Below are positions 5,084-26,684 of a stretch of DNA of 64,000 bases, in pieces; within the stretch, counting starts at the first letter, position 1; every line of letters begins with the position of its first letter. Position numbers and translations under genes: made by a program. Source of the stretch: Epithemia pelagica. Its lineage: Eukaryota; Protista; Bacillariophyta. The stretch is taken from the NCBI GenBank assembly GCA_946965045.2, contig OX337239.1, positions 1,302,001-1,366,000 of the forward strand, given 5' to 3'. Under the pieces are notes generated by a model that made no database searches, was not told the origin of the DNA, and saw only the letters and a program-made list of their open reading frames with translations.

Positions 5084-5293
5084 GTGGTTCCTGAAAGCCT
5101 TTCCGACTTCGCTTTCCGTCGGTGTTCAAATTCTGCTTGCTTGCATAGATCGCAATTACTTCCATCTCACTGCAACTCCATGAAATGGATCAAGCACACG
5201 TCATGACTGTTCGGTAGCGAGATATTTTCTCAAACAATACCAGCACTGTATAGAGTGCAAGTACATAGACCATTCTCTCTACTATTCCACATG

Positions 5294-5495: not shown

Positions 5496-6616
5496 CACTT
5501 CGACGGCGGCCAATCGTTCCGGAACATTTTGTCCAATCGTCGTCGTAGGAGAATGAATGGTGGTGGTGGCGACACGTGATGGTGTGGATTGTGGATGGTC
5601 GTGTGGCGGTGGTGGTATAGAGGTTAAAATTGTTTGCTGCTAGCTTCAGCAAGGGGGCATAGCCACAGCATGTTGGAGATCGGGCGATCTGTCTCATTCT
5701 CGTTTTCACTTGCGTACTGCTTCTGTTCTGAAACTTGCTCTCGTCCATGTTCTGGAAAAGGAGAGGCAACGTCTCGAGTTGCCGATCCAAGATCATTCGT
5801 TCCAGGGTCGGTTGTGTGTGTGGTCATCGTCGTCTTCGTGGATTGTTGCTTTCGTCAAGCGCCGACTCGCCGCACCTCCATTGCCGTGCCGACGGCCAAC
5901 ACACGCGAACCGGCATCATCTACTCTACTTTTTTGTTGTCGTAGGTCGTAGGCGAAAGTGTCCTCCGAGTGCTCGAACGCTCAAAACAAAAAACCTGTTG
6001 TTGAAAACCCTGTTGTTGCACTCGTGTCCAGATGGTGGGGACGAGTTACGAGTTTGGGGGCTCCTCTGATTAGCCTCTGGGGTGTGCCATAGTGCCTGAT
6101 AGGCGTCCAGTGACGTCCTGTCGCCTCACCCGTTCATTGTACAGCCGCGTTGACGTCGCGAGCGGGCTTTCCACCAAGAGCTGTACGCACTAGGCTATGT
6201 TCTAGGTTCTAGTTCCGAGTTGTCGTGGTGGCTTGGGGTTAGACTTCTTCTATTGTCCACCGTTTAAACCTATTACGACCCATGTTACCAAGTTGATCTG
6301 GTTGATCTGTGGATATCAACATTGGAAAACTAGATACGATACAATGTTGGTCTAAGATGCGAAGCAACCGAGCAACAACATGCCAAGTGTAATCGAGCAA
6401 GGAGGGTGTCATGATGATATCGAAAGGTTTTAACAAGACTTCAAGTCTTTTGCTCCTGGGTTCCAATCCAGAAACCTCCAAGGCACAAAAGACAAAGAAA
6501 CCAATGCGCCAGTACCACCAACCGACGGGAGAGCACTCTAGCGATTCACACACGTGTGGCAAGAACGGGAAACCCAATCGATTGCACGCGGCCCTTGTCG
6601 ATTCCTAGGTAGAGAA

Positions 6617-6680
6617 ATGGCGTTACCTGTCTCGATTCTATTTTTGGGATGGCGTTACCTGTCTCGATTCTATTTTTGGG
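6617..6680. repeat. Perfect 32-bp tandem duplication
   Basis: ATGGCGTTACCTGTCTCGATTCTATTTTTGGG x2 (6617-6648, 6649-6680). Confidence 0.95.
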
Positions 6681-7085
6681 GTCCTCCTCTCGTTTGTTCC
6701 AGGAACTTTCGCGCAATCTCATCCACTCCAGTAGGAGGATTCATTGGGGCCGTGTGATGGAGAGAGAAAATGTCTCTCGAATCATCGCTCCAGAGTTCCC
6801 ATCCAAACGCAAAAAAAAGGCAAATTCGAGAGAGGATTGGCTGCCCACGAGCCTCACACACAAGTTGGCAGAACGCACGGCCACAAGGGATCGATCCAAG
6901 GAGGGATTGGCACCAGGAGCGTCACGGAACGAGTGGTGTACCGGTCTCTATACCGTGTTGCCGTGTATATTGATGGACGACCGTGTGGTGGCCTGTTCCC
7001 GTGTGTCTTGTGTACGATTCGAGTGCCGTGCGAGAATCGCCAGGCGATCCTTTCGTGTGGGAGTGGTGGTTGTTCTTGTCATTTT

Positions 7086-7229
7086 CGACACTATTGTTGT
7101 TTTGACATTCGTATCCATGTCCAAACCGCAACCCTCCCACAATACCATGAAGAGCAGAGACAGAAGAAAACAGTCACGTTTGACACGCAAAAGACATCTT
7201 CTTTCTTTCGGGACGGTCATGGCCATGAG
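7086..7229. repeat. Diverged direct repeat, copy 2 (copy 1 at 5294-5495)
   Basis: Same shared blocks as copy 1. Confidence 0.85.
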
Positions 7230-7375
7230 AAGAGTGCATTGCAGTCGATCTATTAGGACTTGTGTATGTGAACACACCTCAAAACTTTTTATACAGCGAA
7301 GGAGGGTAGAGGACGGAGACACGTATTACAGTGTGATGAGTGGTTGGGTCGATCGGTACTTGTCCACACAAAGTA

Positions 7376-7830
7376 TTAGCAATCCAACACTCCAGCAAAG
7401 GCACGATGAATGGCCGCCAGAGGCGACGACGACAAAGAATGAGAATGACTCATGCCTCCCGTATGAGGTGGTAGTACTAGTGATTGGTCCTGGTCATGAT
7501 GGTCGTCCGTCGGGTTCTCGTCGGACAGGACATTGGGTGTTTGCGCGGCCAGTTTCCAATCGTCAGTGTCCATGCGTCGCAACCGTGCCACAATACGGCT
7601 CAATCGTTCCATGGCAATGTCCAACACATCAGGTGATACCCATGCATAGCAAATGCGAAACATGCCGGGTTCGAAGCTGCGTTGACTGGCACCGGGCGTC
7701 AAGACAACGCGGGCATGATGAAACAAAATGGTGGCAAAGATTTCTTCCCATTCAAACGTCTTTTGCGGCAATAACGGCATACCGAACCCACTAGCTTGCT
7801 CTCACGTCGTTTGCTTGTATAGCTATACAT
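7376..7830 (-). pseudogene. C-terminal relic of a class I/II PLP aminotransferase (ACC-synthase-like)
   Basis: PLLPQKTFEWEEIF..ARVVLTPGASQRSFEPGMFRICYAWVSPDVLDIAMERL matches the ACC-synthase-family C-terminus (SPG..EPGWFR.CFA..L..A..R). An in-frame TGA lies just upstream and the N-terminal PLP-lysine region is absent. Confidence 0.6.
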
Positions 7831-7926
7831 GTTGCAAACGGAGCATTTGGTGAATCGTTCGAGCCGGCAAGGTAGCGACATCTCCAGCATGTGCTACTGG
7901 CAATGTCTCAGTACATCGTGTCAAGT

Positions 7927-10267
7927 TCAAGTCTCAGTGCTCTCGGTATCCAATTGTTCCAAGTCCTTCATTAAATCTCGAATTTGCACCGAGGATCGTC
8001 GATCAGCTGAAAAGACAGTGGATCGAAGGACGCGCCAATAATTCTTGTTGCGTTTGGAGCTATCGCGTTTCTCAATGAAGTACGTTTCCATTTCTCCAAT
8101 CCCCTTCACATGGACCTTTCCACGTCGTTGAAACGAAAATTCCAGACCCAAGGACAAGGAGTCTACGACGGCCTTGGTGACATGAACCTTGCCGGGTACA
8201 CCTGTCGATTCCATGCGACTGGCGACATTTACAGTATCCCCCCATACATCGTACAGCAATCGCTTTGTTCCAACTACACCAGCAACGACGGGTCCTGTAT
8301 TGACACCAATGCGCATATTCAACAACACGGGTGGTGAAGTTCCTTCTTCTCCTTGTTGTCGGTGTTGTTGCTGTAGCTGTTGTTGTTCTTGATTGTAGTC
8401 CTGGATACATTGAATCATATCCATAGCGAAATGACAGACAGCGGCGCACTTGTAGGTGGGAGAGTGGTCCGATCCTCCTGGAATACATGTGACCATGTAG
8501 CAATCCCCAATGGTTTTGATCTTGTTGAGTCTATAGCGGTCCAGGTACTCATCAAAACGAGAAAAAATGTCATTGAGCATTGTCACAACTTGTTGCGGTG
8601 ACAGAGCGTTGCTAAGTTTGGTAAAGCCGACAATATCAGCAAACAGTACAGTAGCTTGGGTGTAATGATCGGCAATATGCTGTTGAGAAATGGGTTTGTT
8701 TTGGAGGCGTTGAGCAATTTCGGCAGGGAGGATGTTCCACAGAAGATCTTGCGCCGCTTGTTTTTCTACTGCCAACTGCAATGCCTGTTCTTCCACCGAC
8801 GTATCTTGAATAAAACCAATCAACCAATCGCAGTGTGGTAATTTGCGGACCCCCACTCGACAAGGAAATTCGGTACCATCCTTGCGAGGACCAATCACGT
8901 GGCGTTTCCGGCCCTGGTATGAATCAAGAATAGAAAACAACAAGAAGCAACCACAAACGATGGAAAAATATGTAACGGAATGTCAGAATGAGACTCGGGT
9001 GTACACGATGGATTTGTTTTGGTTCGTTCACGACAGTATTTATTAGCGAACGAGACTCGGGTGTACACAATAGATTTGTTGTGGTTCGTTCACGACAGTA
9101 TATATTAGCGAACGCGTGACGAGCAGGCCGAAGTGTCTCTTGTAGCTCAACTCTCTGTTGCACAGTCATACGTACCACGACAGGTGAAATGCCTCCTCGC
9201 GCGTGAAACTTTTTCATGTACTGGATGTGCCGGTCTCCGGTATGTTGAGATCCACCGACCAATTGAGCAACATTGATCCCCACTGCTGCTTCAGGAGAGT
9301 CAAATTGAAATATTTGGCACATGGCTGGATTCGCCATGAGGATTTCACCCAATCCATCCGTGACCAAAATGGCATCAAAGCTAGCCTCCATAATGGAATG
9401 ATACAACAACGCCAACTCGTTATTGTCATTGGCGTTTTGGTGCTGTGCCTGTTGTGATGGCTGCAATGGAGGTTGATCCGTTTGGCACTGTGAGGTTTGC
9501 TGTTGTTGGAGTGGCTCTTGGCTTCCACAAGGCGCCCTTGTTGCAGTGGTGGTGGATGGCATTTGCGAGTTGGTCTCTTCCACACGAAAGACAAGGATAT
9601 GGTAATCGGAGAGCAACGATTTTGTCGTGTTGCTCTTTTGATGATCCTTTGCAGGACATGACATGGGTTGAATGCGGTATGTCAAAGTCAGGTGACGACC
9701 GTCTCTTGTTCGGCCATGTACCGGCACCATTGGTATGGTAGATGATGACGAGTCCATTACTGATTGCTGTTTGAAAAGCAGACGTTGAAGCAACGACGTT
9801 TGCGGTGGTGGCGGACAGTCATCTTCTGGTAAGGCGAGAAAAGATGACAGAGTGTGGCCCTTTAAACTTGTTTCTTTTTTAGGAGTACTAGGCTCCATCT
9901 TCTTTTCCTCGTGCTCTTCTTGTAGAATGTTATTTGTGTTCGTAGCGACACTGATATCTGGTAAAGGTTCCAGTGGCACCACTGCATCCTGACCAGCGAT
10001 ATCGCCATGATTATCAATAGAATATCTAAACAAGATATGGGCAGTTTGATTTACCAAGACGACTTGTTCGTTGGATGTTTGGACCAAGATCATGGCATCC
10101 AGACTAGCGTCCAAAATAGATGCGGCACACTGAACGAAAAGCATCGGGGACGACGATGAGATGGGCTCCTCATTAGGGGCTTGACCGTTATTGGCGGATC
10201 CACTCGACTCGATCAAGGAGGAAGAAGATGGCACTGTCATGGTGGCTCTGGTATCATCGAAAGACAA
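7927..10267 (-). CDS. Soluble PAS-PAS class III adenylate cyclase, apparently intact (about 692 aa, 2 exons: 10267-9176, 8913-7927)
   Basis: PAS motifs ILDASLDAMILV and IMEASFDAILVTD..RKDGTEFPC. Cyclase motifs LFADIVGFT, KIKTIGDCYMV and YDVWGDTVNVASRMES; the Lys and Asp specificity residues indicate ATP rather than GTP. A GT-AG phase-0 intron at 9175-8914 joins ISPVV|GRKRHV. Confidence 0.9.
8990..9113. repeat. 62-bp tandem duplication inside the cyclase intron
   Basis: GAGACTCGGGTGTACAC..GGTTCGTTCACGACAGTAT.TATTAGCGAAC at 8990 and 9052, with a few mismatches. Confidence 0.9.
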
Positions 10268-10451
10268 AGGGACTTAGAGAGGATCCATGAGCATGAGGAA
10301 GATTCATCGTGCACCGTTGGCTTGAATAAAAAAATCCGAATCCTTCCTACAGATGCGACTGGGAAAAACGCTGTACTTATGCGACCCACCAAACCTCATC
10401 GGACATTAGTCGCTCTATGTTATGCACGATTTTTAAGAAGTCCTCTAGCTA

Positions 10452-10937
10452 CCGTAAATGTTGGGTCTATTGCACCATTACTTTATTGCACCAAACGCAT
10501 GATTTAACTGCTAAAGGAGCCTGTCTGCCAGAAATTCGCCCGCCCTTCCCTCCAACAGAGCCCCACTTGCTCTAAGAGGTATATAAAGAAGAAATCATAG
10601 TTGTAGTGGAGAGCGTGGGGGGAGAGACCATGCCAAAAAATCCTTATCTTTCACGAACTGACTGCATACATTTCGACCTTATAAAACATTAGAAGGGTAG
10701 GTCCGATCTTAATGAAACGCAGTGATTCGGAAAGCGCGTGACGAGCTCTTTAAAATGATGGTCTCACCATCGGTCAATTCAATAGTGTTCTTGAGTTATT
10801 CTTTCAAGCAATTTCTGGAATTATTCTATTATAGATTCAAAAAATTAACCACCAATCCGTTGAGGCCTACTACTTGGGCCTATAGTAAAAAGCATCCGGT
10901 CAATCAACGGATGGTGCAATAGACCCAACATTTACGG
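10452..10937. mobile_element. MITE (Tc1/mariner-type, 486 bp, TA target duplication)
   Basis: Perfect 27-bp TIR CCGTAAATGTTGGGTCTATTGCACCAT (10452-10478 and its reverse complement at 10911-10937). TA on both sides (10450-51, 10938-39). Non-coding interior. Confidence 0.85.
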
Positions 10938-11217
10938 TAGGAGTACCACTCTATAATCTCTATCCGTGGAGATTGGTTACATTAAAAGATACTCCTAATT
11001 TGCTCTTTGGCACAAGCATATAACATGAAATTTGAACTACTGATAAAAAGAAACGTGAGGGTTCAATTTCGCTGCAAAGAAGAACCACTTGTCATCACGG
11101 GGTTGTCAACCTAAATAGTCTACAGCCCTTGAGACCTTGATGGAGTCAACCCACCCAATGCCTCACGGTGAAACCATCCACGCATAACCCATATCGTATG
11201 CCGCAATGTAAACGTTG

Positions 11218-14200
11218 TTATCCGCGCATGACATCTCGATATCCAGTCCATCTTCGATTGCCATTTGTGAGGCTATGACCACCTCCACCTACGACGGCTC
11301 CACACTCAATACATTGCGATGTTTCCATAGCACCTCCACAATCTCCAATGAAGTAGGGATGTCCATTTGGGCATTCGTACCAGTGGTCACTGGCTGTGCC
11401 ACCGTAGTCATATCCACGAACTACGTTCATTGCTCGGACCACCTCTTTAACATCAGCACCATTGAGAGATGCCTCCAATTCCGTGGCTTCTTGTATAATA
11501 TCATCGGCATGTCTGTTTTTCATGTTCTGTACCACCCATGTTAGATGTTCTAAAAGTTTGGATTTTAAATCAGGCTTGGTTCTCGTCCAGTACCCGAGCG
11601 ATCGAACCATGCAGATCCGCACTGTGGCAGAAGAACGATGACTTTGGCTGCCATCAGCCACCTCAATGGCTTCTTCATAAGATTCCAATGATTCCTCCAA
11701 TAGTTTGGACTCATCAGAGTCCCCGCGTTTAATTTTTGCGCCATACGACTGACCCAGCAGACGTAGACATTCGATAAGCGGCATTGCCGGAGGCGTCGGA
11801 GCTTCATTGTTTCGGTTACCACAAGCATCGAATACCTTTTTCATAGGACCTTCACAAATTGAGCGCTTAATCTTCAACAGTCCTCTGGTGTTGCGCCTCT
11901 TCGGTTCTATTTGAGAGAATTTATCCAGAGCTTGTTTTACATCCATCAAATGCTTTCGCTCCAAACTACGGAGAACGGCCAAGTTGATTATTCGGCCGTA
12001 TCGTCGAATAGAGTGAATAGGCGCTCGACAATCAGGACACTGCTTTCCCTTTTCATTCACATCGCTATCCGATAAGGGAAGACATGACGTGAACTGGTTA
12101 CCATCACGTTGGTAAGCACTGTCAATACCAATCAGTCCATCAAGAGTCGACACACTGAAGAAATGCTTGCACGGCAAAACAATAATTGGGTCACAATCCA
12201 CATCATGATCCTCATATTTCTCAAAGGTGATCATGTCAACCACCCGTTCTTTCGACTTAGGATTACTACACTCCTTGCAGAATGAGATATCAGGGCATAT
12301 CTCACCACAAAGGGATGGGCATTGATGCCCACACTCAAGTTTCTTATCGCATCTCTGCAGAGAATAAGATACTTTCGAACTAGTGATATCAGGGATCGAG
12401 GATAACAAACAATAGACGTACCTCATTGCAAGGAAGGCGGCTACAGGGGGCACCACACACAAGCGGACAAATTCCTTGATGCTCACATTCCCAATCACAT
12501 TGTTCCACACATGAGGCACACTGTGTTAAGCAATGTGTTAGCACAGCCTTACAAAAAAGTGAAAATCCCAAAGAAAACTTCAAAACCTCACTTACGGTAT
12601 CACTGCAACTCTTCGGACATTGTGAGTGCGAGCAACGAACTTCGCATATTGCAACTGCACATGGAGGACACCCTCCAGAATGGCACTCTTGTACGCAGGA
12701 GTGCCTACAAAATAGATTCCGTTCGCATTTTTCGTTGCATTTATGTCCGTCCTCACAGGATCCGCAGCTGTGTATAGCAGCAACGGGTTAGGGAACCTAA
12801 TGAAAAGTAACAAAAATTGAAACCGCATGTATGATCGTACCGCTTCTGACAGAGATGCCCACACTCCAAACGACTGGAACAAAGCTCTGGGCACTCTGGA
12901 GATTTTTGCCTGGAGTTTCCACACCAGGTTGTAATTTCGTGTCCACAGCCTTCAAAACGATGAGTGACCTGTTCTTTGCAGTGATTGGCAAAATTGTTGA
13001 GTGACTCTTTGTTTCGCGCGTTATGGCATCGAATGCTTTGAGCGATATGACCACATGTAAGCTCTACTGGGCCAACATTTACGAGACAAGCACCGCACTT
13101 GTCTTTGCATCGTTTCGTACATGGATGGCCATGGGGACATTCTTCTGGTACCCGGGCGCAGGGTTCCATGCAAACTGTATGCTTATGGTTTCTATCCATT
13201 GGGTGACAGAACTGAACTCAAGAACAAACATTGAAGAGTTGAGATGAGGAAACAACATGATGTCACAAGTCGAACACCACTCAATCTTTAATCTTACATT
13301 GGGACAGACATGTCCACATTCGAGACGGTACATGCATTTCCGGCCACAACCTCCATTTGGCCGCCGTGCTCTGAATTCCTCTCTTGAAGACAGCACAAGT
13401 GGTGGATCGGAATGGTGGATTTGACAAACCGTGGGCAACCCTCTAAAAATCCGACCCTCTATCAGGGACAGAATCGGACTCCACGTCGCTTTTCCTTCAC
13501 CTCCAACCAACGTTTTGATGTTGCCAACAAGGATCATACCGTGACGGGCACGAGACAGAAGCACGTTAACTCTCTGGGGCTCCTTGAGGAATCCCACAGA
13601 TCGTTTAGAGTTGGACCGAACAAGCGAAATCACCACAATATCACTTTCTTCACCCTGATAGTTATCAACCGAAGAACATCGCACGCTACCTCCACGCTCT
13701 TTCGAACGCTCGTTTTCTAGTTCGTCATATTCCTCTCCTTCAAACTTGTCGAGATCTTGGTCGCTCACGTATGCTTCAACATCCTTCAAGTGATGCTTCA
13801 TTTCTCCGATTATTTTGAATAGCTGACCCAGGTAAGGTGTCAACACGACGATACTATCCTTGGTATACCCTTGCAACAGAAGAAATCTTACAATTTCGAC
13901 GCACATCATGGCCTCATATTTATTCGACTTCGTTGTTGTAGAGCGACCATGGTCATCTGAATCTTGTTCACCGTCTTCTTTGTGGTCATGGTCGATGAAG
14001 AGGAGATTATGGCTTATCCCTCGCACATTCGGGTATTGATGAACTGAATCATGGTCAATCAAATTTGGGTATGTCTGTTCCCGAATGATCCTTGATATTG
14101 ATGGCCTCATACGATGCTGAACAGCGAGGGTGGCGGATGGAAGCCCCCCAAGTACAAGGCGTTCGAACAAAGAAACATCTAAGTTGTATCCGTTACCGGA

Positions 14201-17027
14201 GACTGCTGAAAGCATGTGAGTTTCTACTTTTGGGCGGAGCTGCTTGTGGTCACCGATGAGCACAAGATGCTTTGTTTCAGGTGAAAGTGAAGCCAAAATG
14301 TGTGCTTCCAGTACCTCTCCGGCTTCCTCGACCACAACGATAGACGGCGCAATTTCTGTAAGCATTTCGCGGTAACGAGCGGCACCTGAAGTCGTGGCAC
14401 CAATAATCCTTGCATCCCGGAGAATCTTCAATGATTTGTCTTGACCTAAAGCTTTTCGCTCGTACTGCAACTTCATGAATTCATCCACGATTCCACGTAG
14501 AGCTGTTCGCGTAGGTGCAAGGACTTCCTCCTCCACTTGAGATACAAACTCGGACCTTCTCTCCTGAGGCCGTTTCCAAAACTCCTCCATCTCTGGGGGA
14601 AAGTCGTCCATCAATGCCAAAACGAATTGAGGTATTTCTTTCCCATTCTTCCATTCGTTCCACAGAAAACCAGAGTTGAGAGGCCTGCCGTTGGGCCCTA
14701 CATGCTGGAATCCATCCTCTTCGTCATTAAAACCAGGTAGCCGAAGATATTCGAACTCAACAGGATGAAAATCCTCGAGAACCCGCTTCACTCCACCACT
14801 GGGAGTATTCCACGAAACAGGCTTTTCCAAATCCTCCAGTGATCGACCAATTTGCTCACGCGCACCATGCATTTGTGCATCTACCTGCCTGATTCGGCTG
14901 GTTGTTCTATCATGACGTTGTGCTTTCTTGGCGGCTAGACTCCCAATTTGAAAGCTGGCAATTCGCTCGGACTTCGACCTCCCACCTAACCGTACAATCC
15001 GTTTCTCACCAAAGTCAAGCATGTGCTCGAGAAATTGATCGAGCGCATGATTGGTGAAGCAAACACAAAGAATCGTTTCATCGGAATTAAGCCTAATAAG
15101 TTGAGCCAAAAGTCCACCAATAAAGGTTTTCCCTGCACGTGGAAACACAAATGAAAAATTATAAGCTTGCCACTTTCAAAAACGAAGCCCGCTCATTGGC
15201 AAAAGCACGGGCAGCAGCGACATGACACGCACCTGTTCCAGGAGGCCCTTGAATCAATGCCACACGCCGTGTCAAGGCATGTACCACAGCCAGGGCTTGT
15301 GATTCATCGAGTGAAGTGTGGTCACTGATATCGGTCGATGATAAATTGAGTAAATCACACGTGTGTCCACGAAAATTGTCATCCTGAGGGAATCGTATGT
15401 GGCGCTGCATGTAGTTTACCTCTCGATGTCTGGTTTCCGTGTCGTCGTCATCCATATTGTTACCAATATCATCCTTTGCTGGAACAACACGATGAGGTTG
15501 CCAACATGTTGTGAGCAACTCCTCAGAAAATGGAATTTGATCCATTTGCTGGAGCGCCTTGAGAATAGATTTGTACGAGAAAAATGATTTGGATATTTCC
15601 ACCAATTCATAAGTGGTCATTCGATCACGCAACCGAGCCGCTTTGCGATGGTTTCCTGTGGACAAGGCAGTTGCATATTCGTCCGCAAAGGCGTGGTTTC
15701 GAGACATTTCGCGAATGGACTCTTGAAAAGCATCTTGGTCGTCAAACTCTACACCTATACAGGGTCCCTGTTTGTTGCGCAACCATTCTTCCTTTCGAAT
15801 AGAAATGGTACCAGTCCGAACTAGCCGGTGGTTGTTCTTCGTGTCCAGAAACGCGACGACAGATCCCTGCAACAACAGCTTGGCGCGACTCCAGTCCGAC
15901 ACAGCGCGATTCGGAGGATCAACTTGAATTCTAAAACTGAGGGAGTGTGCCTCCTTGAGATCCACATCGATGATGCGAGCATTATGCCAGGGAGACTTCC
16001 GTTCGGTTATGCCTTGACGCATGGAACTTACGGAATCTTCTCGCAACAATCGAAAGCTGGAATCGAGTAACCGAGCCACAGGGCCAGCTCGAATGAACGT
16101 ATTTTCACCACTAGCCAATGGAAGATAGGGTGAAACTTGACATTGCAATTCAGGGGCCGTGGGAACAATGGCAATGTCACGGTAGTTGGTAGAATCATTA
16201 TCATGGCGACCGCCCGGAGGACGACTGTCGGTATACCAACAAACACCTTGAAGTTGTTTCTTTGTTTCTCTCGTTGCAGCAGATACCTCTTTCTGGTTGA
16301 GTCTTGGTCGTTTTGTGGAAGTAACACTGTTCCTGTCGCCCTCTTCTTCTTCTTCTTCTTCTTCGGACGGTGGGATCATCAAAACAATACAAAGCAATTG
16401 GACCGGGCCATTGTGGTTGTCGCCGGTACCGCTACCATGATCACGCAATGTCTCAGCCAAATCTCGAACTGGCTGGGAATGACGAGCTTCTCCGACCGAT
16501 TTGGCCACGTGCAACAAAAAGCAGGCAATCAACTGATTCGCCGCTTGGTCAAGGCTCGCCACCACATTAGGTCCATTCAAAAAGGTCAAAACATGGGGGA
16601 TTCCATAAATCAAGTGAAGATAGCGATCTCGCAAGGGTCGGTACAAGGGTCTAGACATGATTTCTTGCAATGCATGTTGCAGAAGGGGGATTACAAGTTC
16701 GGTAACGTCCTCTGGGGTATCAAGAAAGCCGACGATCTGCTCTAAGCAAGAACGACCTTGATTTCGTTCATCCACCATCATCGACAAGAGCACTGGTTTG
16801 GAGTCGAAAGAATCCATGCCTTGCAAAAATCGCATCGCTTGAGGCTTACTCCTGAGGGGCGCTGCTGAAGGATCCTTCATGAGTCGGTGAAAAAGGCTGG
16901 CACGACTATCTCCTTCTCCAAACCGGCCTCTGCCTCCCCCACCTCGTCCATGATTACCACGGCCTTTCCTCCCTCCACCTCCTCTGAAATTTCCTCCACC
17001 ACGGCGGACTCTGGATGCACGGTCCAT
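11218..17027 (-). CDS. ZNFX1: ZNFX1-like SF1 (UPF1-like) helicase with NF-X1 zinc fingers, a RING-like region and a C-terminal RZ finger; 6 exons
   Basis: Walker A GPPGTG|KT is split by an intron at 15232-15133. Also VVVEEAGE, IGDHKQLRP, QHRM, VDNYQGEESD and NVLLSRARHG, followed by CGH.C repeats across three further exons, PCKHFF..CPDCR, and the RZ motif HWYECPNGHPYFIGDCGGAMETSQCIECG. RGG-rich N-terminus from ATG 17027. Confidence 0.85.
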
Positions 17028-17296
17028 GGTTTCGGTTCTCTCTTTTGACTTTGCAGAGTCCAAGTGCAGTTTCTCAAGAATCCAAGTGCAGTTCCTCAAG
17101 AAACACACTCTTCACCGTAAAACACCAACATTTTCACCGCAAAACCTAAAGGAGATACACCATATCTAACACACTACCGTACACACTCTGCACCAATGAA
17201 ATTACACCTCAAATTTTCGCCAAAAGAAACAACCACCCTCTTTTTTTCACCTCTTTTCTCATCCAGTTGAAAAACATTCCAATTGAGTTTCTAGTG

Positions 17297-19587
17297 TTAC
17301 TTTCCTTCATCATCCCCAGGCAACGAATCTTCTTCTCTGGAAAGAGATCCTTTCATGTGTAGTACTGTGTTGTCCTGTTCGGATGCCTCTTCTTTTATAG
17401 ACTCCTGCTGCATTTCCTCATCCTCTTCCATATCCCCCACACTGAAACTGGCGCTTCGGTCCAGTTGCTTGACATTTTGCAAGAGTTCCATGATATCTTG
17501 TGACTTTCGTGCATCTTCCGCGGCCACACTGTACCGTAATGTTTTCCAAAAGCTTGTCGCCCGTGTCTTGTCTCGTTCTTCAATGAAAAAGGTTTCCATT
17601 TCACCAATACCCTTCACATGGACTTTTCCTCGCTTCTCAAAGCTAAAGTCATTGGCGGCACTTTGCGAGACATTGTCAATTACTGATTTTGTCACTTGTA
17701 CGCGACCCGGTTGTCCAGTGGATTCCATGCGACTTGCGACGTTGACGGCATCGCCCCAGACATCATACAAGAACCGTTTGGTTCCCACTACACCGGCTAC
17801 CACCGGGCCTGTATTGATCCCGATCCGCATATTCAAGGGATTTTCCGTATGTTCCTTGTTGTATTCTCTCAGCACGTGAATCATATCCATGGCAAAATGA
17901 CAGACAGCGGCACACGCCTTGGGAGGATCACGACTCGATGGTATGGACGTCCTGTAAAGTGTGAGAACATATCGTCAGGATAAGCCATACGACGAAGACC
18001 AAACAAGAAGGTGCAAGTGAGTGCGTACAAGATTTCTAGACACATCGATTCCGTTCTTTTCTTACACCATGTAGCAATCCCCGATGGTCTTGACCTTATT
18101 TAGACTTTACATTTCCAACTTTTCATCAAATTGGGTAAAGATTTCATTCAGAAATTGGACAATTTCCACAGGCTGTAACGAACTGCTCATTTTCGTAAAG
18201 TCGACAATGTCTCCAAACAAAATGGTGGCCTCATAAAAATGATCGGCCAAATGTCCTGGATCATTCTTGAGTCGATGGGCAATTTCGGGAGGGAGCATAT
18301 TGTACAACAATTCTTCCGCAGCGCGTTTCTCGACCGCCAATTCCATGTGTTTGCGTTCGTCCGTTACATCATGAATAAAGCCAACCAGCAGATCCGCATC
18401 CGGTACCTTTCGAACGCCTATCCGACATGGGAATTCCGTTCCGTCGAGACGGCGCGCCACCACCTCTCTCTGAGAACCCTGTCATTGCAAGAAAAGACAA
18501 ATATAGAGCATGAGATGCATTCGAAAGGTAGCCTTTGTGTATCGCACATGCAAAGACTTCAATGCTGGATAAACCATCACCATAACCTTTCATCGTCAGT
18601 AGTACACATACCAAAATGGTCGACTGACCACCACGTTGTCGAAATCGTTCCATATATTCCTTGTGATGTGCGGCATGAAAGGGATTTCCTCCAACCAAGG
18701 TACTAATGTTTTGGTCGACAATATCCTTACTGGATTCGATACCAAAGGTTGTCAACAGGGAGGCATTGACCTTGACAATAGTTCCATCATGAGTGACCAC
18801 GACAATGGATTCAAACGAGGAATCCAAAATAGAATCATTCAATTGTCGTTCATGATCCACTTGTCGCTCGGCCGTCACATCGTGAATAAAACCACACAAC
18901 CATTCCGAATGAGGGACGCGTTGCACACCAATACGACAAGGAAATTCGGAACCATCATAGCGTTTTGCCACCAATTGACGTTGAGTACCCTATTGTGATA
19001 CAACAAACATAAAACGGAAAAGATACGCCCAATCACATGAGCTTATAAGCTCTTTTCAAGGGTATTCATTCTTTCATTCACAGCGTTACCAAAACCTATG
19101 TACGTACCAAGATGGTGGAGGTTCCTCCTCGATTCCAAAAGTTTTGCATGTATTGCACGTGCTGCTGAGAATGGACCTCAGAGCCACCGACGAGCTGAGC
19201 AATGTTTTGACCAATCAACGTATTGTCGTCGTATCCAAAGATTCTGAGTGTTGCTGGATTGACGCGAACTATAGTGCCTCGTGGATCGGTCTCAACAATG
19301 GATTCAAAGGCGGCATTGAAAACGGATTGAATCTAGTCATGGTCGTGATCCTCCTCTTTTTCGTCCTTCTGGGTTCCGTCGTTCTTTGGCTGTTGTGTCA
19401 AGGCCATGTCATTGTGTTTTGTTGATGAATCAAGGTGTGGTTCGAGGGCTTTGTAGACGTCAGAGGCACCATATCGTTGAACCAAGTCCTGCACCGAATC
19501 TTCGACAGTTGCTTCTGTCGGTCCATTCGACTTTGCGTCCCCATTTCGGCGTTGTTGTGCTCCGCGATGCCTACCAAACCAACTCAT
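17297..19587 (-). pseudogene. PAS-PAS adenylate cyclase with two in-frame stops (4 exons)
   Basis: Exons 19587-19108, 18989-18612, 18478 to about 18066, and about 17951-17297, with GT-AG introns. TAG at 19333-19335 precedes PAS-A (DHD*IQSVFNAAFESIV) and TAA at 18107-18109 lies in EKLEM*SLNKVKTIGDCYM. Cyclase motifs are otherwise intact. Confidence 0.85.
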
Positions 19588-19798
19588 GGGGAGAACTCAC
19601 AATTGGACGTTTGGAAAATGGCAGTAGTCTACAGAGGTAGGTCGCCTGAAAGACTGTGTTCTGGTTCGTCTTCTTCTTGTGAGCAAGTCGACGATTATTC
19701 AAACACAGAATACGACATGGACGCCATCAAAGAGATTCACCATTGATCATGATCGACTTTTTTTTTGTACTATTTTACGGTCTATAACAATTGGACTC

Positions 19799-22700
19799 CT
19801 AAGCGGTGGGTACGCAAAGGAGGGGTGTTTCGTCCGTGATACTAAGGAACTGTGCCAGAGGTGCGGGGGAGTAGATGGGAGTGACCGGAGCAAAACATGG
19901 TGTAGCCAGATTTTGCAACTGAGTGGTTCTTGTTTTTCGTGTTGCTTGGTGTTGTCGTATTGCGGCGATGTTGTTATTGGCATGGGTTGCCAGTGCCGAA
20001 ACGATTGCGTGGCCAAGGGAGGCTTTTGCATAGTGCCCGATTGAGTAGATATGTGCTTCTGGGTAGGAGAATTTTTTTGTTTTGCTGTTGGCGGCGGTAA
20101 GGAGGTTGCTTGGTGCGTCTGACGCTTCTTGAAAGAGCCTGTATGCCGCAGGATGTGCTTTGCTTCTTTTTTCGTCTTTTCCGAAGAAGGCGTTGGTCCA
20201 AGGGGGTGGTTGTGTCGTTGAGAACAGATGTGGTTGATAAATTGATGGAAAAAGGAGACGGTCGGCGAATGAACCAAGCGCTCCGAGATGGTCTACCGTA
20301 AAAGGTAGAAGGTATATGCCATTGTGGAGAAGGTGTCTTGATGTCTCGGGGTCTCGACAAAACTTGGCCCTTGCCGCTTCTTGATGCGTCCTAGATGCCA
20401 AAGTGGCGAGTGTGTTGTGGTCGGACGGGTCAAGAATGGTTTGGGGTTGTTGGGGAGGTGGGATAGTAATGTCAATCGCGACGTATTGAAACGGTGAGTT
20501 TTTGTGCGGCTTGGACAGGAGCATACCGACGTCTGCTGGTCTAATGTTTCTTTGGTGTTGTGGTGTCAAACCTGGGGGTTCGATGTGGACATCATGGGGA
20601 GTGTCGACGGCTTCGGCTGCTGGAGCGATTTGGCGGAGAATGTCGTAGAGTGTGTCTCTGATGGCATTGGATAGAGGTGTTTTGGAAGCAGAGGTGCATG
20701 AGTACAGATGGTCACCCATTGGGTCGATCGCTTTTGTGGCTGAGCAGCGACATCGTTGGGGCCAGGATTGTGTGGGGTCTCGGACGAACAAAGGTAATCT
20801 CAATTTCCGTTTGATAGCGGTTCGGAAGACACTGTTTTGGAAACGGAATTTGGTTGCGGTTAGTGGAAGAGAGAGAGCCATACTCGTGAGGGGCGAAAGT
20901 AAGCCGGGCAAAAAGATTCGCTGCTTTGGGTTGGTTTCTGTGAATAGTTTTGGGATTGTGTGCTCTTGCACAGTGTGGTTCAAAAGGCAATTGTGTGTTG
21001 TGTGATCATACCTCTTTGGTACGTATAAGCTCTCTTCTGCGTATTCGTTTGCAAAAAGTGACAGAGTCTTACGGAAGGTTGTCATATATTCGTCGGTACT
21101 ATCTTTCCAGTTCGACAGTTCTCGTTGGTGAACGAGTGGGATTGGAGTGTCGGTTGATGTTGCCAGAGCTATCGCCCGGGCTGTTTGTGTCAGCAGACGA
21201 GGATAGGCCGCCACCGCTGCCTGTTGGTATCCGAGTCCCCCCAGTCGTTGTGGAATCGTGGCGATGAGTGCTGAGGACGTGGAGATTTCATTTTCTGGTA
21301 GGGAGGTGAGTTTTGCCAGGAAATTTGTTATCAGTTGTTCTGTCTGTGTTGTTGTTGGACTGGACCAGAGGGTCGTTCTTGGGTTGGTCTGCTTGTATGC
21401 TAAGTTGATATCGGTCGGTAGCAGGTGCAGGATTGCTGAGACCATCGTAAATTTAAAGAGATTGTGCTGTGTTTGGAGGTCGTCGAGTTGGAGAAGGCAA
21501 TTCATTTTGTGTTGCATGCCTTGTAATTTTTTGTTGATGTACTGTCGTGCAAAGGCAGTGGATCCGATTGGTTGACCAAGGAATCTCACACTGCTTGTTA
21601 TTTCTGCTTTTGAGGGGTCATCGGGCGACAGAAACGATAGTGCTTGATTGAGGCTGTGTGTTTGTTTTTCGTCCAGGTTGGACGGGGAGTGTCCTTCGGT
21701 GGAGGTGAGGATGGTCGTTTTTGATTTGTTTAAAACAATTCCTAGGGGTTTGCCAAGCTCTTCGAAGCGGTGAAGAAACCATGGTATGTCACAGTGTGGC
21801 AGGCATACCGATGTATCATCCATGATGGATGCGGTGTGGCCGATGCCGCCCATTCCGTCGTCGTTGGGGTCGTTGTTGCGCAGTCTGAGTTGTGCTCTTT
21901 TTGCTTGCTCGTTGTTGAGTTTGTTCGTCAGTGCTAGTAATACCAGGCATGAGAAGAGAGGGCTGAGTGGGCAGCCTTGTGGAAACCCTTCAGTTTGTGT
22001 GAGGTAGTTGGCCGCTTTGTTGTCATCAAAGTACCATTGGTTACAGGTATGTTTGGTTAGTAGGTCGAAAAGGGGGACCAATTGTGTTGTCGCTTCGTTC
22101 TCTAACAAAATCTTTCTTGCTTCGGTTCGGCTGACATTGTTGAACATGTTTACCAGGTCTAGCATGACGAGAGCCCGGCTTGGAGGTGTTGTTGGCTGGT
22201 TGTTTTCGGTTGTGTTGTTTTCTGTTGTGTTGTTTTCCAGATCATGAGTCTTGTCAATGTATTGTTTAACCGCCATTGCGGTTGTTTGGGCCACAAAATC
22301 AACCCCCCCGGGTACTTGTATCCCGTATTGGCCTCCTTTCAAGAGGAGGGGGCGAATGTTGTCTGTGAGATGCACCAGAGCGGCTTTAGCCGCTACTCTT
22401 TGTATGGCTGTGCCGATGCCGATCGGTCGCAGCCGTTCCAGGTTTGCCATGTCCTTGTGTAGGGCAAGGAAATAATTGCTTGCGAGGATTTGTTGTACAG
22501 TGGTTGGTATTTGTCCTGTCACCACGAGTTGGATCAGAGCTTTTATGTTGTGAAAGTATGGCCGTGTTGCGTCGGGTGCGCTTGTGGTTTTGTATAATGC
22601 CATGGACACAAGGGTGTCTGTGCATGTGGCGAACGGTCCTGAGGCCGTGCCTGGTTTCATTTGTCGGAGTGCTGACTCAAACAGTTTATCTTGTAGTTTC

Positions 22701-23821
22701 AGGTATTGTGCTGCCGGTGGAGGCATATTTGTGTGACCGTGAGCTCTTGTCGCCGGCGGTGGCTGTCGTCTTTCAGGGAAGAGTTGTTTTTGGCATCTGT
22801 CGATTCGTGCCGTTGTCAAGGTTGCAGGTGGTGTGTTGGTTGTAAGTCTTTTCACTGCTGCTCGGTAGTTGCCTAAGTCTGCCAGTTGTTGTGCGGAGGC
22901 TAGCCGCCATGAAGGCAATGGGTCAGTTGGCTGATGTTGTTGTTTGTTTTTTTGGTTTTGCCGCTTCTTTTTGTTGTTTGTTGTCCTTGTGTTTGGCAAC
23001 GGTGTTGGGTTCCATATCATGTTATGGAGTTGCTCAATCCTGCCTGATTTCAGCAGCAAAAGTCTTGCTCGGAACGCGTTCGAATGGGTGAGGTGCACTG
23101 TGCCCTGTATTGGTGCAAGGAGCAACGGCTCTAGGAGGATGAGCAGTTTCCAGAATGGGGTGGCATCGACGTCATAGGCGGGTGGCCGTTCGTCTTTCAG
23201 AATGGTTGGCGCCAGCGGTGATGTGGCTTCAAGTATCCAATTGGTCATGTTGTTGTAGGTGGCATAAAATTCGGCCCTGAGCGGTGGCTTGAGCTTGTGC
23301 CAGAGGCTCCGACGGAAGGGCGGTGGGGATATTTGTAGTTTGTGGATATAAGCTAGGCTGTTTTTCCAGTTTGCAGTTGTTTCTGGTGTAGAATGTCGGT
23401 AGGTATGTAGGACTAAGTCGATGTTCGTCTTTGACCTACTATGTTTTTTTGTTACGTGTTTTCTAAGGTGGCCTTCAGTGGCGAAGATGGCAGTGGGAGT
23501 GTCGCATGTCGGACATGGATGGAGTCCGTATTGGGTGCATAGGGTTGGGGTGAGGTAATCTGATGGATGGGTTTCATTGTGTTCGGTGATGAGGTGTTGT
23601 TTGAGTGATGCTTGGGGGTTGGTTGTCAATGGGGGCACTTTCCACGGGCAATCTGGCACGGGACAGTGTTTGGGTGGTTTTGTGGTTGGATTACTCATGT
23701 GGCCCTTTGGCCCTATCTTCATGCGGGACCACATGGCCGGTGCGCGAGTCGGCGATGTTGGGGTTGCCAGACTGTACCAAAGTCTGCGCAAACCTCCAAG
23801 CATCTTGCGCGTCTGTGTCAT
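19799..23821 (-). CDS. Non-LTR ORF2: C2H2 zinc fingers, reverse transcriptase, CCHC knuckle, restriction-like endonuclease
   Basis: CPVPDC..HLITEH and CPTC..HVTKKH. RT motifs LRPIGIG, GQYGI, LDLVNMFN, GFPQGCPLSP and SIMDD. CRCS..DPMGDHLYSC. RPADV..AIDITI. Confidence 0.9.
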   Translation of the reverse strand: MTQTRKMLGGLRRLWYSLATPTSPTRAPAMWSRMKIGPKGHMSNPTTKPPKHCPVPDCPWKVPPLTTNPQASLKQHLITEHNETHPSDYLTPTLCTQYGLHPCPTCDTPTAIFATEGHLRKHVTKKHSRSKTNIDLVLHTYRHSTPETTANWKNSLAYIHKLQISPPPFRRSLWHKLKPPLRAEFYATYNNMTNWILEATSPLAPTILKDERPPAYDVDATPFWKLLILLEPLLLAPIQGTVHLTHSNAFRARLLLLKSGRIEQLHNMIWNPTPLPNTRTTNNKKKRQNQKNKQQHQPTDPLPSWRLASAQQLADLGNYRAAVKRLTTNTPPATLTTARIDRCQKQLFPERRQPPPATRAHGHTNMPPPAAQYLKLQDKLFESALRQMKPGTASGPFATCTDTLVSMALYKTTSAPDATRPYFHNIKALIQLVVTGQIPTTVQQILASNYFLALHKDMANLERLRPIGIGTAIQRVAAKAALVHLTDNIRPLLLKGGQYGIQVPGGVDFVAQTTAMAVKQYIDKTHDLENNTTENNTTENNQPTTPPSRALVMLDLVNMFNNVSRTEARKILLENEATTQLVPLFDLLTKHTCNQWYFDDNKAANYLTQTEGFPQGCPLSPLFSCLVLLALTNKLNNEQAKRAQLRLRNNDPNDDGMGGIGHTASIMDDTSVCLPHCDIPWFLHRFEELGKPLGIVLNKSKTTILTSTEGHSPSNLDEKQTHSLNQALSFLSPDDPSKAEITSSVRFLGQPIGSTAFARQYINKKLQGMQHKMNCLLQLDDLQTQHNLFKFTMVSAILHLLPTDINLAYKQTNPRTTLWSSPTTTQTEQLITNFLAKLTSLPENEISTSSALIATIPQRLGGLGYQQAAVAAYPRLLTQTARAIALATSTDTPIPLVHQRELSNWKDSTDEYMTTFRKTLSLFANEYAEESLYVPKRYDHTTHNCLLNHTVQEHTIPKLFTETNPKQRIFLPGLLSPLTSMALSLPLTATKFRFQNSVFRTAIKRKLRLPLFVRDPTQSWPQRCRCSATKAIDPMGDHLYSCTSASKTPLSNAIRDTLYDILRQIAPAAEAVDTPHDVHIEPPGLTPQHQRNIRPADVGMLLSKPHKNSPFQYVAIDITIPPPQQPQTILDPSDHNTLATLASRTHQEAARAKFCRDPETSRHLLHNGIYLLPFTVDHLGALGSFADRLLFPSIYQPHLFSTTQPPPWTNAFFGKDEKRSKAHPAAYRLFQEASDAPSNLLTAANSKTKKFSYPEAHIYSIGHYAKASLGHAIVSALATHANNNIAAIRQHQATRKTRTTQLQNLATPCFAPVTPIYSPAPLAQFLSITDETPLLCVPTA

Positions 23822-24632
23822 TCGTAAATGACTTTGTTCTTTCTAAAAATTGTCGCATTTCCTCGATGCGGGAAGGGTTGTTGTGTGCAACGTACTTGAA
23901 AATGAGTTCGATTTCTTGCATGGTCGTTGCAGAGAATTCGTTGTCGCCCTCTCCTGGGTCTAGGTTGTCGTCGCTACCAATGAGTGCCCGCGAGTGGTCG
24001 TCTGATTCTTCAGTGTCCATCAGGTCGTCATTGTTTTGTTCGTCTTCGGTTTGTTCCGCTAGTGCGGCGAATTGGTTCCGTTTGGCCGGAGGTTTCGAGT
24101 CTTCGTTTTCAGAGGTTTGGTCCGCGAAGTGGTTTTGGTTTGTTTGGGCTGCCACTGTTGTCCAATCTGTTCCGTCGTCGTAGGGGTCGCTTGCTTCTTC
24201 GTCTGTTGGTTGCATAGCGGAGGCGCTACGTTTGTTGGTCGGTGGGCTATTGGGATCCTTTGGTTTGGTTGTTGGTGTTGTGAGAACGTCGGCGTCAGTC
24301 TCATCCGTGTTGTCTTCCAAGTTGTTGTGTTTTCGGCGTAGCAGCCGGTTCGTGAAGGCCAGGAGTTTGTTTGTGTGACTTGATGAGGAAGGAGTTGTCG
24401 GGTCTTGGTTGGTGGTTTGTTGTCTCGGAGGTGTCGCTGCTACTGCTGCCAGGGTGGGGAGCAGGATGTTTTCCGGGAAGTCTGGGTGTTGTCTAATCGT
24501 GTTGGTGGTGAGCAAATGAGTATCCGGCGTCTTCCGCAAATATAGCGTGTAATACTGCGTGTCTGGGTCCTCATTGTAAGTCTCGGCAGCATTCCGCATG
24601 TCTGTCTGACAGTCCGACATCCCAGCCCCCAA
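23691..24632 (-). CDS. Non-LTR ORF1 (acidic, low-complexity, uncharacterised)
   Basis: 313-aa ORF between the 5' TSD and ORF2, on the same strand, overlapping the ORF2 start. Confidence 0.6.
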   Translation of the reverse strand: MGAGMSDCQTDMRNAAETYNEDPDTQYYTLYLRKTPDTHLLTTNTIRQHPDFPENILLPTLAAVAATPPRQQTTNQDPTTPSSSSHTNKLLAFTNRLLRRKHNNLEDNTDETDADVLTTPTTKPKDPNSPPTNKRSASAMQPTDEEASDPYDDGTDWTTVAAQTNQNHFADQTSENEDSKPPAKRNQFAALAEQTEDEQNNDDLMDTEESDDHSRALIGSDDNLDPGEGDNEFSATTMQEIELIFKYVAHNNPSRIEEMRQFLERTKSFTNDTDAQDAWRFAQTLVQSGNPNIADSRTGHVVPHEDRAKGPHE

Positions 24633-25402
24633 GCCCCAATTCTCGGCGCGCGGGCGCGGGGCTACAATAGAATCTACAATATAGTGTTCGTGTTCTGGGT
24701 TCTGGGGATTTTCACATCCATTCGCGATCCATTAGCGACTTGTTCACCATTCATTCTCATGGTCGCATCTTAGTCGTTGAAGGATGATCGACCCAACGGA
24801 TTTCCTGCGGAATTTTACAATACAATTATTATTTTCACTCCCCACTCCCCACCAATTTCCAATTTCCGATTTCGCTCTCTGAGTACGAAGTACGAACATT
24901 CTTTGGGCGCACCAAAACCGAACACAAACACAACCCTTCAGACAATTTTTTCTTCTTATCCTTGTTGATCCGACGTCCTCTTTATCAAGACAATCAAAAG
25001 GTTCAAGGAGTCGGCGACAAGGAAAATCGAAATAGTGCTGCTGGAAAAGGGTGCGTCTTCGACTGCATCCCAAGACTGGCCAGGACGATCTGCCAGAGGA
25101 CGGACGCATCGCAATGGAAAACCTTTCTTGTCTCCGCCTAATGCACCTAAAACAAGCAATAGAGTTTCTCATTTTTCTTTTCTAAAATATATCATAGTTT
25201 GACCATAGGCATGCAATCGTTTTATCGACACGACTAAGGACACAAACAAACTGCAAGAGCAACATGACAAGCATTCTTCATGTACATCTCCTGACGTTGT
25301 TTCCGACCCGTATCCATGGAAAAAATGATGGAGCATGTTACTTCTCCCAAAGTTGCTTTTTATATACTCATACACACCAAGACAATAACACGCCCCCTAT
25401 GT

Positions 25403-26035
25403 TTAGGCAGCAACGGGGTTACTTGACACTTGCTCCAAAGAATCCCTTCCCTTGGCGCCACCACTTTTAAGAACAGTCACCATCAAATCTTCAGAAATGG
25501 CGCTAAAGACAATCTTCCATGCATTGCGAATGTCGTCAGTGAAATCGTCACCGAACATTTCCTCCATCATGTTAGTCAAGGCCTTGCCCATGATTGGGAA
25601 CATTTCCGCTTGGACGCCGTAATTGACATGCTTTTCTCCCAACCCCTTGATTTTCTCCGTCAAGAGGACTCCATCCGGACCCAACATGTTGAAGGCTGTG
25701 TCAAACATGGTGATCAACTGCTTCGAATGAGCAATAAACTTGGGGTCGGATGTGAGGTCGTCCACTTCGGCGTAAAGGTCGTACCCAAACATTGGCTTGG
25801 CCTTTGGGCATTTGTTAAAAAGACTGGAAAGGTGAAATGAATGAAAGTCGAAAGTAGCACGGACAACAACAACATGAGGAACCATGTGGCTTCTTCTGAC
25901 GATAAACCCATTTGTCAAAACTTACAATTTCATCACCTTTTGTCCAGCTACATTCTCATAATCCTCCTTTTCCTTAAGCTTGCCCCAAGTATCGAGCGCA
26001 AGTTTCAAAGTATCAGGATCGACTGACTTGACCAT
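25403..26035 (-). CDS. Single-domain 3/3 globin (neuroglobin/myoglobin-like, about 176 aa, exons 26035-25926 and 25823-25403)
   Basis: W(A12) in DTWGKL, P(C2) and F(CD1) in KCPKAKPMF, distal His(E7) in KFIAHSK, proximal His(F8) in LGEKHVNYGV, and H-helix AWKIVF. GTAAG..CAG intron at 25925-25824. Confidence 0.9.
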
Positions 26036-26645: not shown

Positions 26646-26684
26646 AAGAATGAGTCTTCACAACAAAAATGAGCTTCACAAAAC

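Follow-up and report, generated by a model that had tools for sequence, protein, structure and literature searches.

The cyclase locus of Epithemia pelagica

The window analysed here is a 64,000-nt stretch of Epithemia pelagica DNA (contig OX337239.1, positions 1,302,001 to 1,366,000), and the genes in question are three paralogues, referred to as gene 1, gene 2 and gene 3, in which PAS domains are joined to a class III cyclase catalytic domain (CHD). Together with a globin gene, the three paralogues lie on one strand (minus) and span less than 35 kb. Read as transcribed, gene 3 comes first, followed by transposon-rich DNA, the globin gene, a retroelement resembling a long interspersed nuclear element (LINE), gene 2, a ZNFX1-type helicase gene and gene 1. 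The coordinates, which derive in part from open reading frames (ORFs), profile hidden Markov models (HMMs), contigs from public sequencing runs (X1, X3 and X4) and a sister assembly, are collected in Table 1; the haem-pocket positions are numbered as in FixL of Bradyrhizobium (BjFixL).

An initial annotation of this DNA had described genes 1 and 2 as soluble gas-sensing adenylate cyclases with FixL-like haem-PAS domains, clustered with the globin gene in a candidate system connecting O2 or NO to cyclic AMP (cAMP). In it, the stop codons in gene 2, the ZNFX1-type helicase gene and the LINE-like element were overlooked or described differently, and gene 3 was not mentioned. Gas sensing by a soluble adenylate cyclase remains the best reading suggested by the sequence of gene 1 and does not hold for gene 2, which is a pseudogene with two in-frame stop codons. 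Only one of the three local cyclase copies, gene 1, is intact.

Table 1. Positions of the features discussed in the text, counted from the first letter of the window
Feature	Position	Strand	Basis	Residues
Gene 1, intact PAS-A(degenerate)-PAS-B(FixL-like)-CHD adenylate cyclase (predicted), 683 aa	7927..10240	-	ORFs, splice sites, Pfam	
Gene 1 PAS-B, residues 279-397, intron-split	8788..9406	-	family HMM alignment, mapped via P0001 to BjFixL	His200 = His338 (codon 9227-9229); Arg206 = Lys344 (9209-9211); Arg220 = Arg359 (8902-8904); Ile215/Leu236/Ile238 = Val/Ile/Leu
Gene 1 class III cyclase catalytic domain, residues 438-638	8065..8667	-	Pfam, adenylate cyclase 9 alignment	
Gene 2, PAS-A-PAS-B-CHD pseudogene, transcribed and spliced	17297..19587	-	ORFs, X4 spliced contig	
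Gene 2 PAS-A	19329-18861	-		His200 = His143; Arg206 = Asn; Arg220 = Arg164; Ile215/Leu236/Ile238 = Val/Ile/Leu
Gene 2 PAS-B	18845-18350	-		His200 = His269; Arg206 = Arg; Arg220 = Arg290; Ile215/Leu236/Ile238 = Val/Ile/Leu
Gene 2 in-frame TAG, just before PAS-A	19333..19335	-	X1, X3 (record 10), 0 differences	Leu in relatives
Gene 2 in-frame TAA, cyclase domain	18107..18109	-	X1, X3, spliced X4	replaces the invariant Tyr of xYxLNK(I/V)KTIGDCY
Gene 3, degenerate PAS-CHD paralogue	39864..41940	-	sister-assembly comparison, family profile	
ZNFX1-type helicase gene	11218-17108	-	Pfam ZNFX1, AAA_11/AAA_12, RZ finger	
LINE-like retroelement	19758..24880	-	Pfam RVT_1; 5' limit from sister-assembly junction	
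Globin gene, neuroglobin-like, stand-alone, 176 aa	25403..26035	-	ORFs, Pfam Globin, neuroglobin alignment	
Block without counterpart at this site in the sister assembly, 21,249 bp	3632..24880		blastn of ctg1358l against the window	

Gene 1 is predicted to encode a complete class III adenylate cyclase

Gene 1 consists of two exons (9176-10240 and 7930-8913, minus strand) followed by a stop codon (7927-7929) and separated by a GT..AG intron of 262 nt (8914-9175), which has canonical ends and sits at a position conserved in the family. The spliced product of 683 aa has no internal stop and matches PAS and Guanylate_cyc in Pfam (E 7e-62 for the latter); the PAS motifs that the initial annotation had quoted for gene 1 are present in this two-exon gene.

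The CHD of gene 1 contains the metal-binding residues Asp448 and Asp492, the substrate-specifying residues Lys488 and Asp577, and the transition-state residues Asn584 and Arg588. It aligns with both the C1 and the C2 domain of mammalian adenylate cyclase 9, and the single chain has both the metal-binding Asp residues of C1 (448 and 492) and the four residues typical of C2, namely the Lys, the second Asp type, the Asn and the Arg listed above. Because all six catalytic residues are present in one chain, gene 1 meets the needs of a homodimeric ATP-specific cyclase. The cyclase domains of genes 1 and 2 both carry the ATP-type Lys/Asp pair as well as both metal-binding Asp residues, the Asn and the Arg, so that the alignment with adenylate cyclase 9 and the residue coordinates bear out the earlier assignment of the Lys/Asp pair in these two genes. 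Similarly, as claimed before, no transmembrane-like stretch was found in gene 1 or gene 2; the maximum hydropathy over 19 residues was 1.64, within PAS-A. We conclude that gene 1 is predicted to encode a complete and soluble homodimeric class III adenylate cyclase.

Upstream of the CHD, PAS-A of gene 1 is degenerate in that the F-helix motif is absent and a long low-complexity insert is present. The linker between PAS-B and the CHD is of the D-x-T/coiled-coil type and terminates in the cyclase-transducer-like motif LLWNILPAEIAQRL; the equivalent linker of gene 2 matches the end of the HNOBA model in Pfam with a score below the cut-off.

The PAS-B domain shares its origin with the FixL and DosP haem domains

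An intron separates the F helix from the G strand in every FixL-like PAS domain of the window, always at an equivalent site. The domains were examined by means of the family HMM, as exon pieces, and with the intact relatives P0001, a PAS-PAS-cyclase fragment, and P0162, the Epithemia orthologue of gene 2, as proxies. When PAS-B of P0001 was compared with the PDB, FixL was retrieved first (1d06, E 2e-14; seven FixL entries) and DosP (EcDOS) thereafter, and LOV and other PAS domains followed only later. In NCBIfam, the best specific model for the relatives and for exon 2 of gene 2 was FixL, with DosP as the second. Finally, the 12 best Foldseek matches of an AlphaFold model of PAS-B of P0162 (mean predicted local distance difference test score 80.8) were FixL haem domains, in agreement with the kinship to FixL proposed in the initial annotation; the two such motifs that it had quoted from gene 2 (HSQQHVQYMQNF and HAAHHKEYMERF..RRLDGTEFPC) are both found in that gene.

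In the alignment of P0001 with BjFixL, a His, a Tyr and two Arg residues coincide with His200, Tyr203, Arg206 and Arg220. In FixL, Arg220 contacts propionate 7 or bound O2, and Arg206 contacts propionate 6. PAS-B of gene 1 has the proximal His and the Arg220 equivalent (Table 1), and it also retains the equivalent of Tyr203; the distal-pocket positions Ile215, Leu236 and Ile238 were mapped by hand via the P0001-BjFixL alignment and are hydrophobic in gene 1 and in both PAS domains of gene 2. In total, sequence, profile and predicted fold make it close to certain that PAS-B and the FixL and DosP haem domains are homologous.

A flavin-binding LOV domain was also considered and was ruled out, since the photoactive-Cys motif GXNCRFLQ is absent; at the place of this motif, gene 1 has GINVAQLVGG, and gene 2 has GQNIAQLVGG or DQNISTLVGG.

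A family of PAS-PAS-cyclases is widespread in diatoms

A word search with exon 1 of gene 1 retrieved one relative (P0001), and an exhaustive search was needed to reveal the family: the profile search with P0001 retrieved 343 cluster representatives with E <1e-30. PAS-PAS-cyclases are present in Epithemia, Cyclotella, Conticribra, Skeletonema, Thalassiosira, Stephanodiscus, Attheya and Chaetoceros, and are named in the databases only as 'hypothetical protein', 'PAS domain S-box protein' or 'adenylate cyclase'.

Residues were counted in 982 domains of the FixL-like type from the best 150 of the 343 relatives and the window genes. His occupies the His200 position in 92% of these domains, the Tyr203 position is Tyr in 70% and Phe in 16%, and the Arg220 and Arg206 positions are Arg in 74% and 35%, respectively; among the cyclase-proximal domains, 79 of 108 have the proximal His. 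The family consensus, NvKmLMP..A..HDgYL.rY..TGvK.VIg..R.v.A.RKDG..FP, is strikingly similar to rhizobial FixL.

In a maximum-likelihood tree of PAS-B and the cyclase domain, gene 1 and P0067 of Epithemia as well as gene 2 and P0162 form well-supported pairs, and the His and Arg state is found in nearly all eukaryotic members. Because each of the two genes pairs with its own Epithemia orthologue, genes 1 and 2, which are 52% identical, are old paralogues. Altogether, these observations point to a credible, uncharacterised and diatom-wide family of predicted haem-PAS adenylate cyclases.

Many of the cyclase-type domains have a further His one helical turn ahead of the proximal one, at a distance of four residues (HAxxH, as in HAAHH, HAEKH and HSQQH), and an Epithemia protein without the proximal His keeps the earlier one (HADQP). 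The search also retrieved P0009, P0014, P0002 and about 60 other proteins of 1800 to more than 5000 aa in which 8-14 FixL-like PAS domains are arranged in tandem and mostly have the His; Pfam scans of three of these long proteins revealed no catalytic output domain. In Epithemia clementina, the orthologue of gene 2 is followed, about 9 kb downstream, by another gene for repeated FixL-like PAS domains (L002:21115-22683; JBGMNV010000073).

Proposed regulation of gene 1 by a haem ligand

We propose that gene 1 encodes a soluble homodimeric adenylate cyclase in which cAMP synthesis would be set by a ligand at a FixL-type haem-PAS domain, and we assign to this reading a probability of about 0.6. 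Considered separately, haem binding by gene 1 is likely, and ligand-dependent control of its cAMP synthesis is somewhat less so. The proposed signal path is modelled on the established knowledge of FixL. PAS-B would bind haem b via His338, and the region of Arg359 and the FG loop would move once O2 (or NO or CO) has bound at the ferrous iron of this haem. This shift would be relayed through the D-x-T/coiled-coil linker helices and the transducer element of the dimer to the cyclase domains and thereby alter the cAMP output. The direction of the response, on or off, and the physiological signal, i.e. O2, NO, CO or the redox state, are not readable from the sequence.

Several observations weigh against this proposal. 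For the members of the family, haem binding and gas response are predictions from sequence and fold. The direct match of the first PAS half of gene 1 to FixL in the PDB is weak (E 0.48), and as whole domains the PAS domains of the window are intron-split and were therefore examined in pieces or via relatives only. The Arg206 position is occupied by Lys in gene 1. The proximal His is replaced by Pro in P0067, which is the closest orthologue of gene 1, and by Leu, Gln, Phe or Ile in a diatom subclade of 12 members that has kept the cyclase; beyond this subclade, a few single proteins, P0067 among them, are also without the proximal His. Because P0067 and one subclade do not have the His, haem is not obligatory in the family, and this is the main caution against expecting it in each member. 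Moreover, the branch of gene 1 in the tree is longer than that of P0067 (0.43 versus 0.25). No gene 1 transcript was found among the contigs from the RNA-like run, a weak negative in that these contigs had been matched to the gene 2 stretch and not to gene 1 itself. Finally, because the block that contains gene 1 is missing from a sister assembly, gene 1 would be dispensable in at least one haplotype or strain.

The substitutions of the proximal His in P0067 and in the 12-member subclade with its retained cyclases would fit an alternative in which the PAS domains are descended from haem-PAS domains and have lost the haem, so that they would serve in dimerisation, as a scaffold or in the binding of another small ligand, and the cyclase would not be regulated by a gas. 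Similarly, PAS-A of gene 1 and PAS-B of gene 3 do not have the haem helix, and in the model of PAS-B of P0162 the confidence of the F-helix region is low (54-68), as expected for a model without the cofactor. Nevertheless, a His in nine-tenths of the domains counted and in the majority of the cyclase-proximal ones, accompanied by Arg220, Tyr203 and hydrophobic distal positions, is a pattern of conservation that is hard to account for without a cofactor, and gene 1 itself retains the His, the Tyr and the Arg. We consider it unlikely that the haem has been lost and favour a haem-binding PAS-B in gene 1.

Gene 2 is a transcribed pseudogene and gene 3 is decaying

Gene 2 encodes the full architecture in four exons (19108-19587, 18612-18989, 18066-18478 and 17300-17951) separated by three introns, and is interrupted by two in-frame stop codons, each of which is one substitution away from the residue found in relatives. 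Public runs were compared with the window over positions 17200-19750. The DNA-type contigs of runs X1 and X3, which are from the same organism, had 0 differences across both stop codons. In a 7902-nt contig of run X4, exactly the three predicted introns, which have GT..AG ends on the minus strand, are removed, and this contig also had 0 differences. In X6, a metatranscriptome relative that is 95-99% identical, the third splice of gene 2 is shared; the codon at 18107 lies too near the end of this contig to be called. Because the X4 contig is spliced and retains the stop codons, gene 2 is transcribed and correctly spliced and is unable to give a full-length protein. The possibilities that the stop codons are assembly errors or are spliced out were ruled out, since the independent DNA runs and the spliced contig carry both. 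We conclude that gene 2 is an old paralogue that is now a transcribed pseudogene.

Gene 3 has the layout of gene 1. Its PAS-B fits the family profile at the two ends only, and the segment of the haem helix is replaced. Compared with the sister assembly, 8 bp are deleted from the window copy at 40730/40731, within the FADIVGFT motif, and the frame is thereby shifted; in the sister copy, the 8 bp are present, and this copy has a TGA in PAS-A and a change of Trp to Leu in YDVWGD. Gene 3 is transcribed, as it is present in an X4 contig (record 13). On the basis of its sequence, gene 3 is judged to be a decaying paralogue without the haem helix.

The gene 1 block is missing from a sister assembly

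The sister assembly (ENA ERZ21939226, ctg1358l, here L007) is 99% identical to the window and, as determined by blastn, joins window position 24881 directly to position 3631. The 21,249-bp block without a counterpart there contains the LINE-like element, gene 2, the ZNFX1-like helicase gene, gene 1 and 4.3 kb more; the globin gene is retained. In a word search of the protein collection with exon 1 of gene 1, no gene 1 protein from the sister assembly was found.

These findings, together with the two nonsense codons of gene 2, the frameshift of gene 3 and the other lesions in its sister copy, the transposon-filled surroundings and the longer branch of gene 1, would be expected if the whole local cyclase cluster were decaying, gene 1 were non-functional or redundant, and the real function were carried out by family members elsewhere in the genome. 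By contrast, gene 1 has an uninterrupted frame of 683 codons and a canonical intron at the family position, and every catalytic and haem-pocket residue tested is present. Decay that includes gene 1 is improbable in our view, and we continue to regard gene 1 as the intact, and probably haem-regulated, copy.

One edge of the block coincides with the apparent 5' end of the LINE-like retroelement; a deletion, an insertion and a haplotype difference are candidate origins of the difference. The depth of the X1 contigs is 62-68 for the block with genes 1 and 2 and 130 for gene 3, which hints at a hemizygous block; depth is not the same as copy number, and no claim is drawn from these values.

The globin is probably an independent neighbouring gene

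The globin gene consists of exon 1 (25926-26035), an intron (25824-25925) and exon 2 (25406-25823), with the ATG at 26035 and the stop codon at 25403. The product matches Globin in Pfam (5e-18), and its closest solved structure is neuroglobin (E 5.5e-12), with the His residues E7 and F8 aligned to His64 and His96 of neuroglobin. The description of a globin with His-E7 and His-F8 about 6 kb from gene 2 was thus accurate: both genes are on the minus strand, with the globin gene 5.8 kb upstream, and about 5.1 kb of the gap is the LINE-like retroelement. The orthologues, which encode 130-175 aa, likewise stand alone and share the position of the intron. A globin-coupled cyclase in which the globin was formerly an N-terminal exon of gene 2 was ruled out on the basis of the globin's own ATG, conserved intron and stop codon and of its stand-alone orthologues.

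The initial annotation went further and suggested globin and cyclases as a candidate unit for handling and sensing O2 or NO, a reading in which selection would keep the cluster together. The three cyclase paralogues and the globin gene are indeed on one strand within less than 35 kb, and in E. clementina the gene 1 orthologue ACA910_018911 and the globin gene ACA910_018912 have no annotated gene between them and are on a single strand, in the same order and orientation as in the window; this is the sole trace of conserved linkage. However, these two genes are 73 kb apart, and related diatoms can share a gene order by mere inheritance, which is the simplest account of the E. clementina order. 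Moreover, five loci with related cyclases (the two orthologues from Epithemia, gene 3 of the sister assembly and two diatom contigs from metagenomes) have neither a globin gene nor a ZNFX1 gene at a distance of up to 10 kb. Up to the same distance, no cyclase gene was found around three orthologues of the globin, which are 71%, 80% and ~64% identical; at the third of these loci, the contig extends only ~0.8 kb on one side. Short-range linkage is, thus, absent at 8 of 8 related loci examined. The sister assembly has the globin gene without the block of genes 1 and 2, and two of the three nearby cyclases are broken. Together, these observations do not support a globin-cyclase system. A selected unit is very improbable; the globin is probably an independent neighbouring gene and not a partner of the cyclase, and it should not be assumed to be one at this locus.

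Comparison with known systems

FixL of Bradyrhizobium and Sinorhizobium, the best match in sequence, profile and fold, shares with the diatom domains the PAS fold, the F-helix His200 and Tyr203, the G-strand Arg220, the hydrophobic distal positions and RKDG..FP. It differs in that its output domain is a histidine kinase, whereas gene 1 is an intron-bearing gene of a eukaryotic host with a predicted class III adenylate cyclase as output. In addition, LVGG replaces LMPE before the F helix, and the Arg206 position is taken by Lys in gene 1 and by Asn in PAS-A of gene 2; the haem in the diatom protein is predicted from sequence. DosP (EcDOS) of E. coli, the second-best match in structure and sequence, likewise has a haem-PAS domain joined directly to a cyclic-nucleotide enzyme. 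However, DosP degrades cyclic di-GMP (c-di-GMP) by an EAL domain and has a distal Met ligand, whereas gene 1 would make cAMP; no equivalent of this distal ligand was identified in the window protein.

Cyanobacterial class III cyclases with PAS or GAF domains (CyaB1-type) and LOV-cyclases share the layout of PAS, linker and CHD, and the nearest non-diatom relatives of the CHD are cyanobacterial CHDs with ~47% identity. According to the tree labels, the cyanobacterial PAS domains do not have the FixL His/Arg signature; the LOV-cyclases are set apart by GXNCRFLQ, in place of which gene 1 has GINVAQLVGG. The FXL haem-PAS proteins of the green alga Chlamydomonas are reported to have FixL-like PAS domains that bind haem and O2 and are said not to be coupled to a class III cyclase, a description that sets them apart from the diatom proteins. 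Haem-PAS domains are known in combination with kinases and c-di-GMP enzymes. The full-text literature searched contained no published description of adenylate cyclases with a haem-PAS domain, nor of the diatom family reported here.

As outlined in a later paper, HemAC-Lm of Leishmania is an O2-sensing adenylate cyclase with a fused globin (Sen Santara et al. 2013, cited in PMC11259077). As far as this outline goes, HemAC-Lm resembles gene 1 in being a soluble eukaryotic adenylate cyclase with proposed O2 regulation via a haem sensor domain, and it differs in that the sensor is a fused globin, whereas here a PAS domain would act as the sensor, with the globin encoded separately at least 5.8 kb away.

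The FixL-like PAS-cyclases could be diatom-wide one-protein transducers from O2 (or NO) to cAMP and the first class III cyclases gated by a FixL-type haem-PAS domain, within a larger algal expansion of such domains; we advance this broader idea tentatively. The expansion, which would be undescribed, would include proteins of more than 3000 aa with 12-14 FixL-like haem-PAS domains. Diatoms alternate between O2 supersaturation in the daytime and hypoxia in sediments, biofilms and blooms, and in model diatoms cAMP connects CO2 to gene expression. To our knowledge, the means of direct oxygen sensing in photosynthetic protists are poorly understood. A haem-PAS domain wired to an adenylate cyclase would be a simple sensor of O2 or NO and, if our reading is correct, would provide a direct molecular link from oxygen status to cAMP signalling in diatoms. 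Because the family is widespread in diatoms, biochemistry on one member would extend to the others.

Neighbouring genes and mobile elements

The gene between the two cyclase genes 1 and 2 encodes a ZNFX1 domain, an AAA_11/AAA_12 helicase core, NFX1-like Cys-rich repeats and an RZ-type zinc finger. Its large ORFs (13079-17108) were at first taken as gene 2; their translation and the Pfam matches identified them as the ZNFX1-type helicase. The X4 contig extends from gene 2 into this gene.

The surrounding region is transposon-rich. The LINE-like element contains a 1340-aa reverse transcriptase ORF (19799-23821) and an upstream ORF (23691-24632), and has an A9 tail (19758-19766) that lies 170 nt upstream of the ATG of gene 2. 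A Harbinger-like transposon described in the initial annotation (26271-31345) is absent exactly there in the sister assembly; because the sister assembly lacks the element at this exact place, it is a polymorphic insertion. Finally, the sister assembly has a 1.55-kb insertion at window position 39016/39017.

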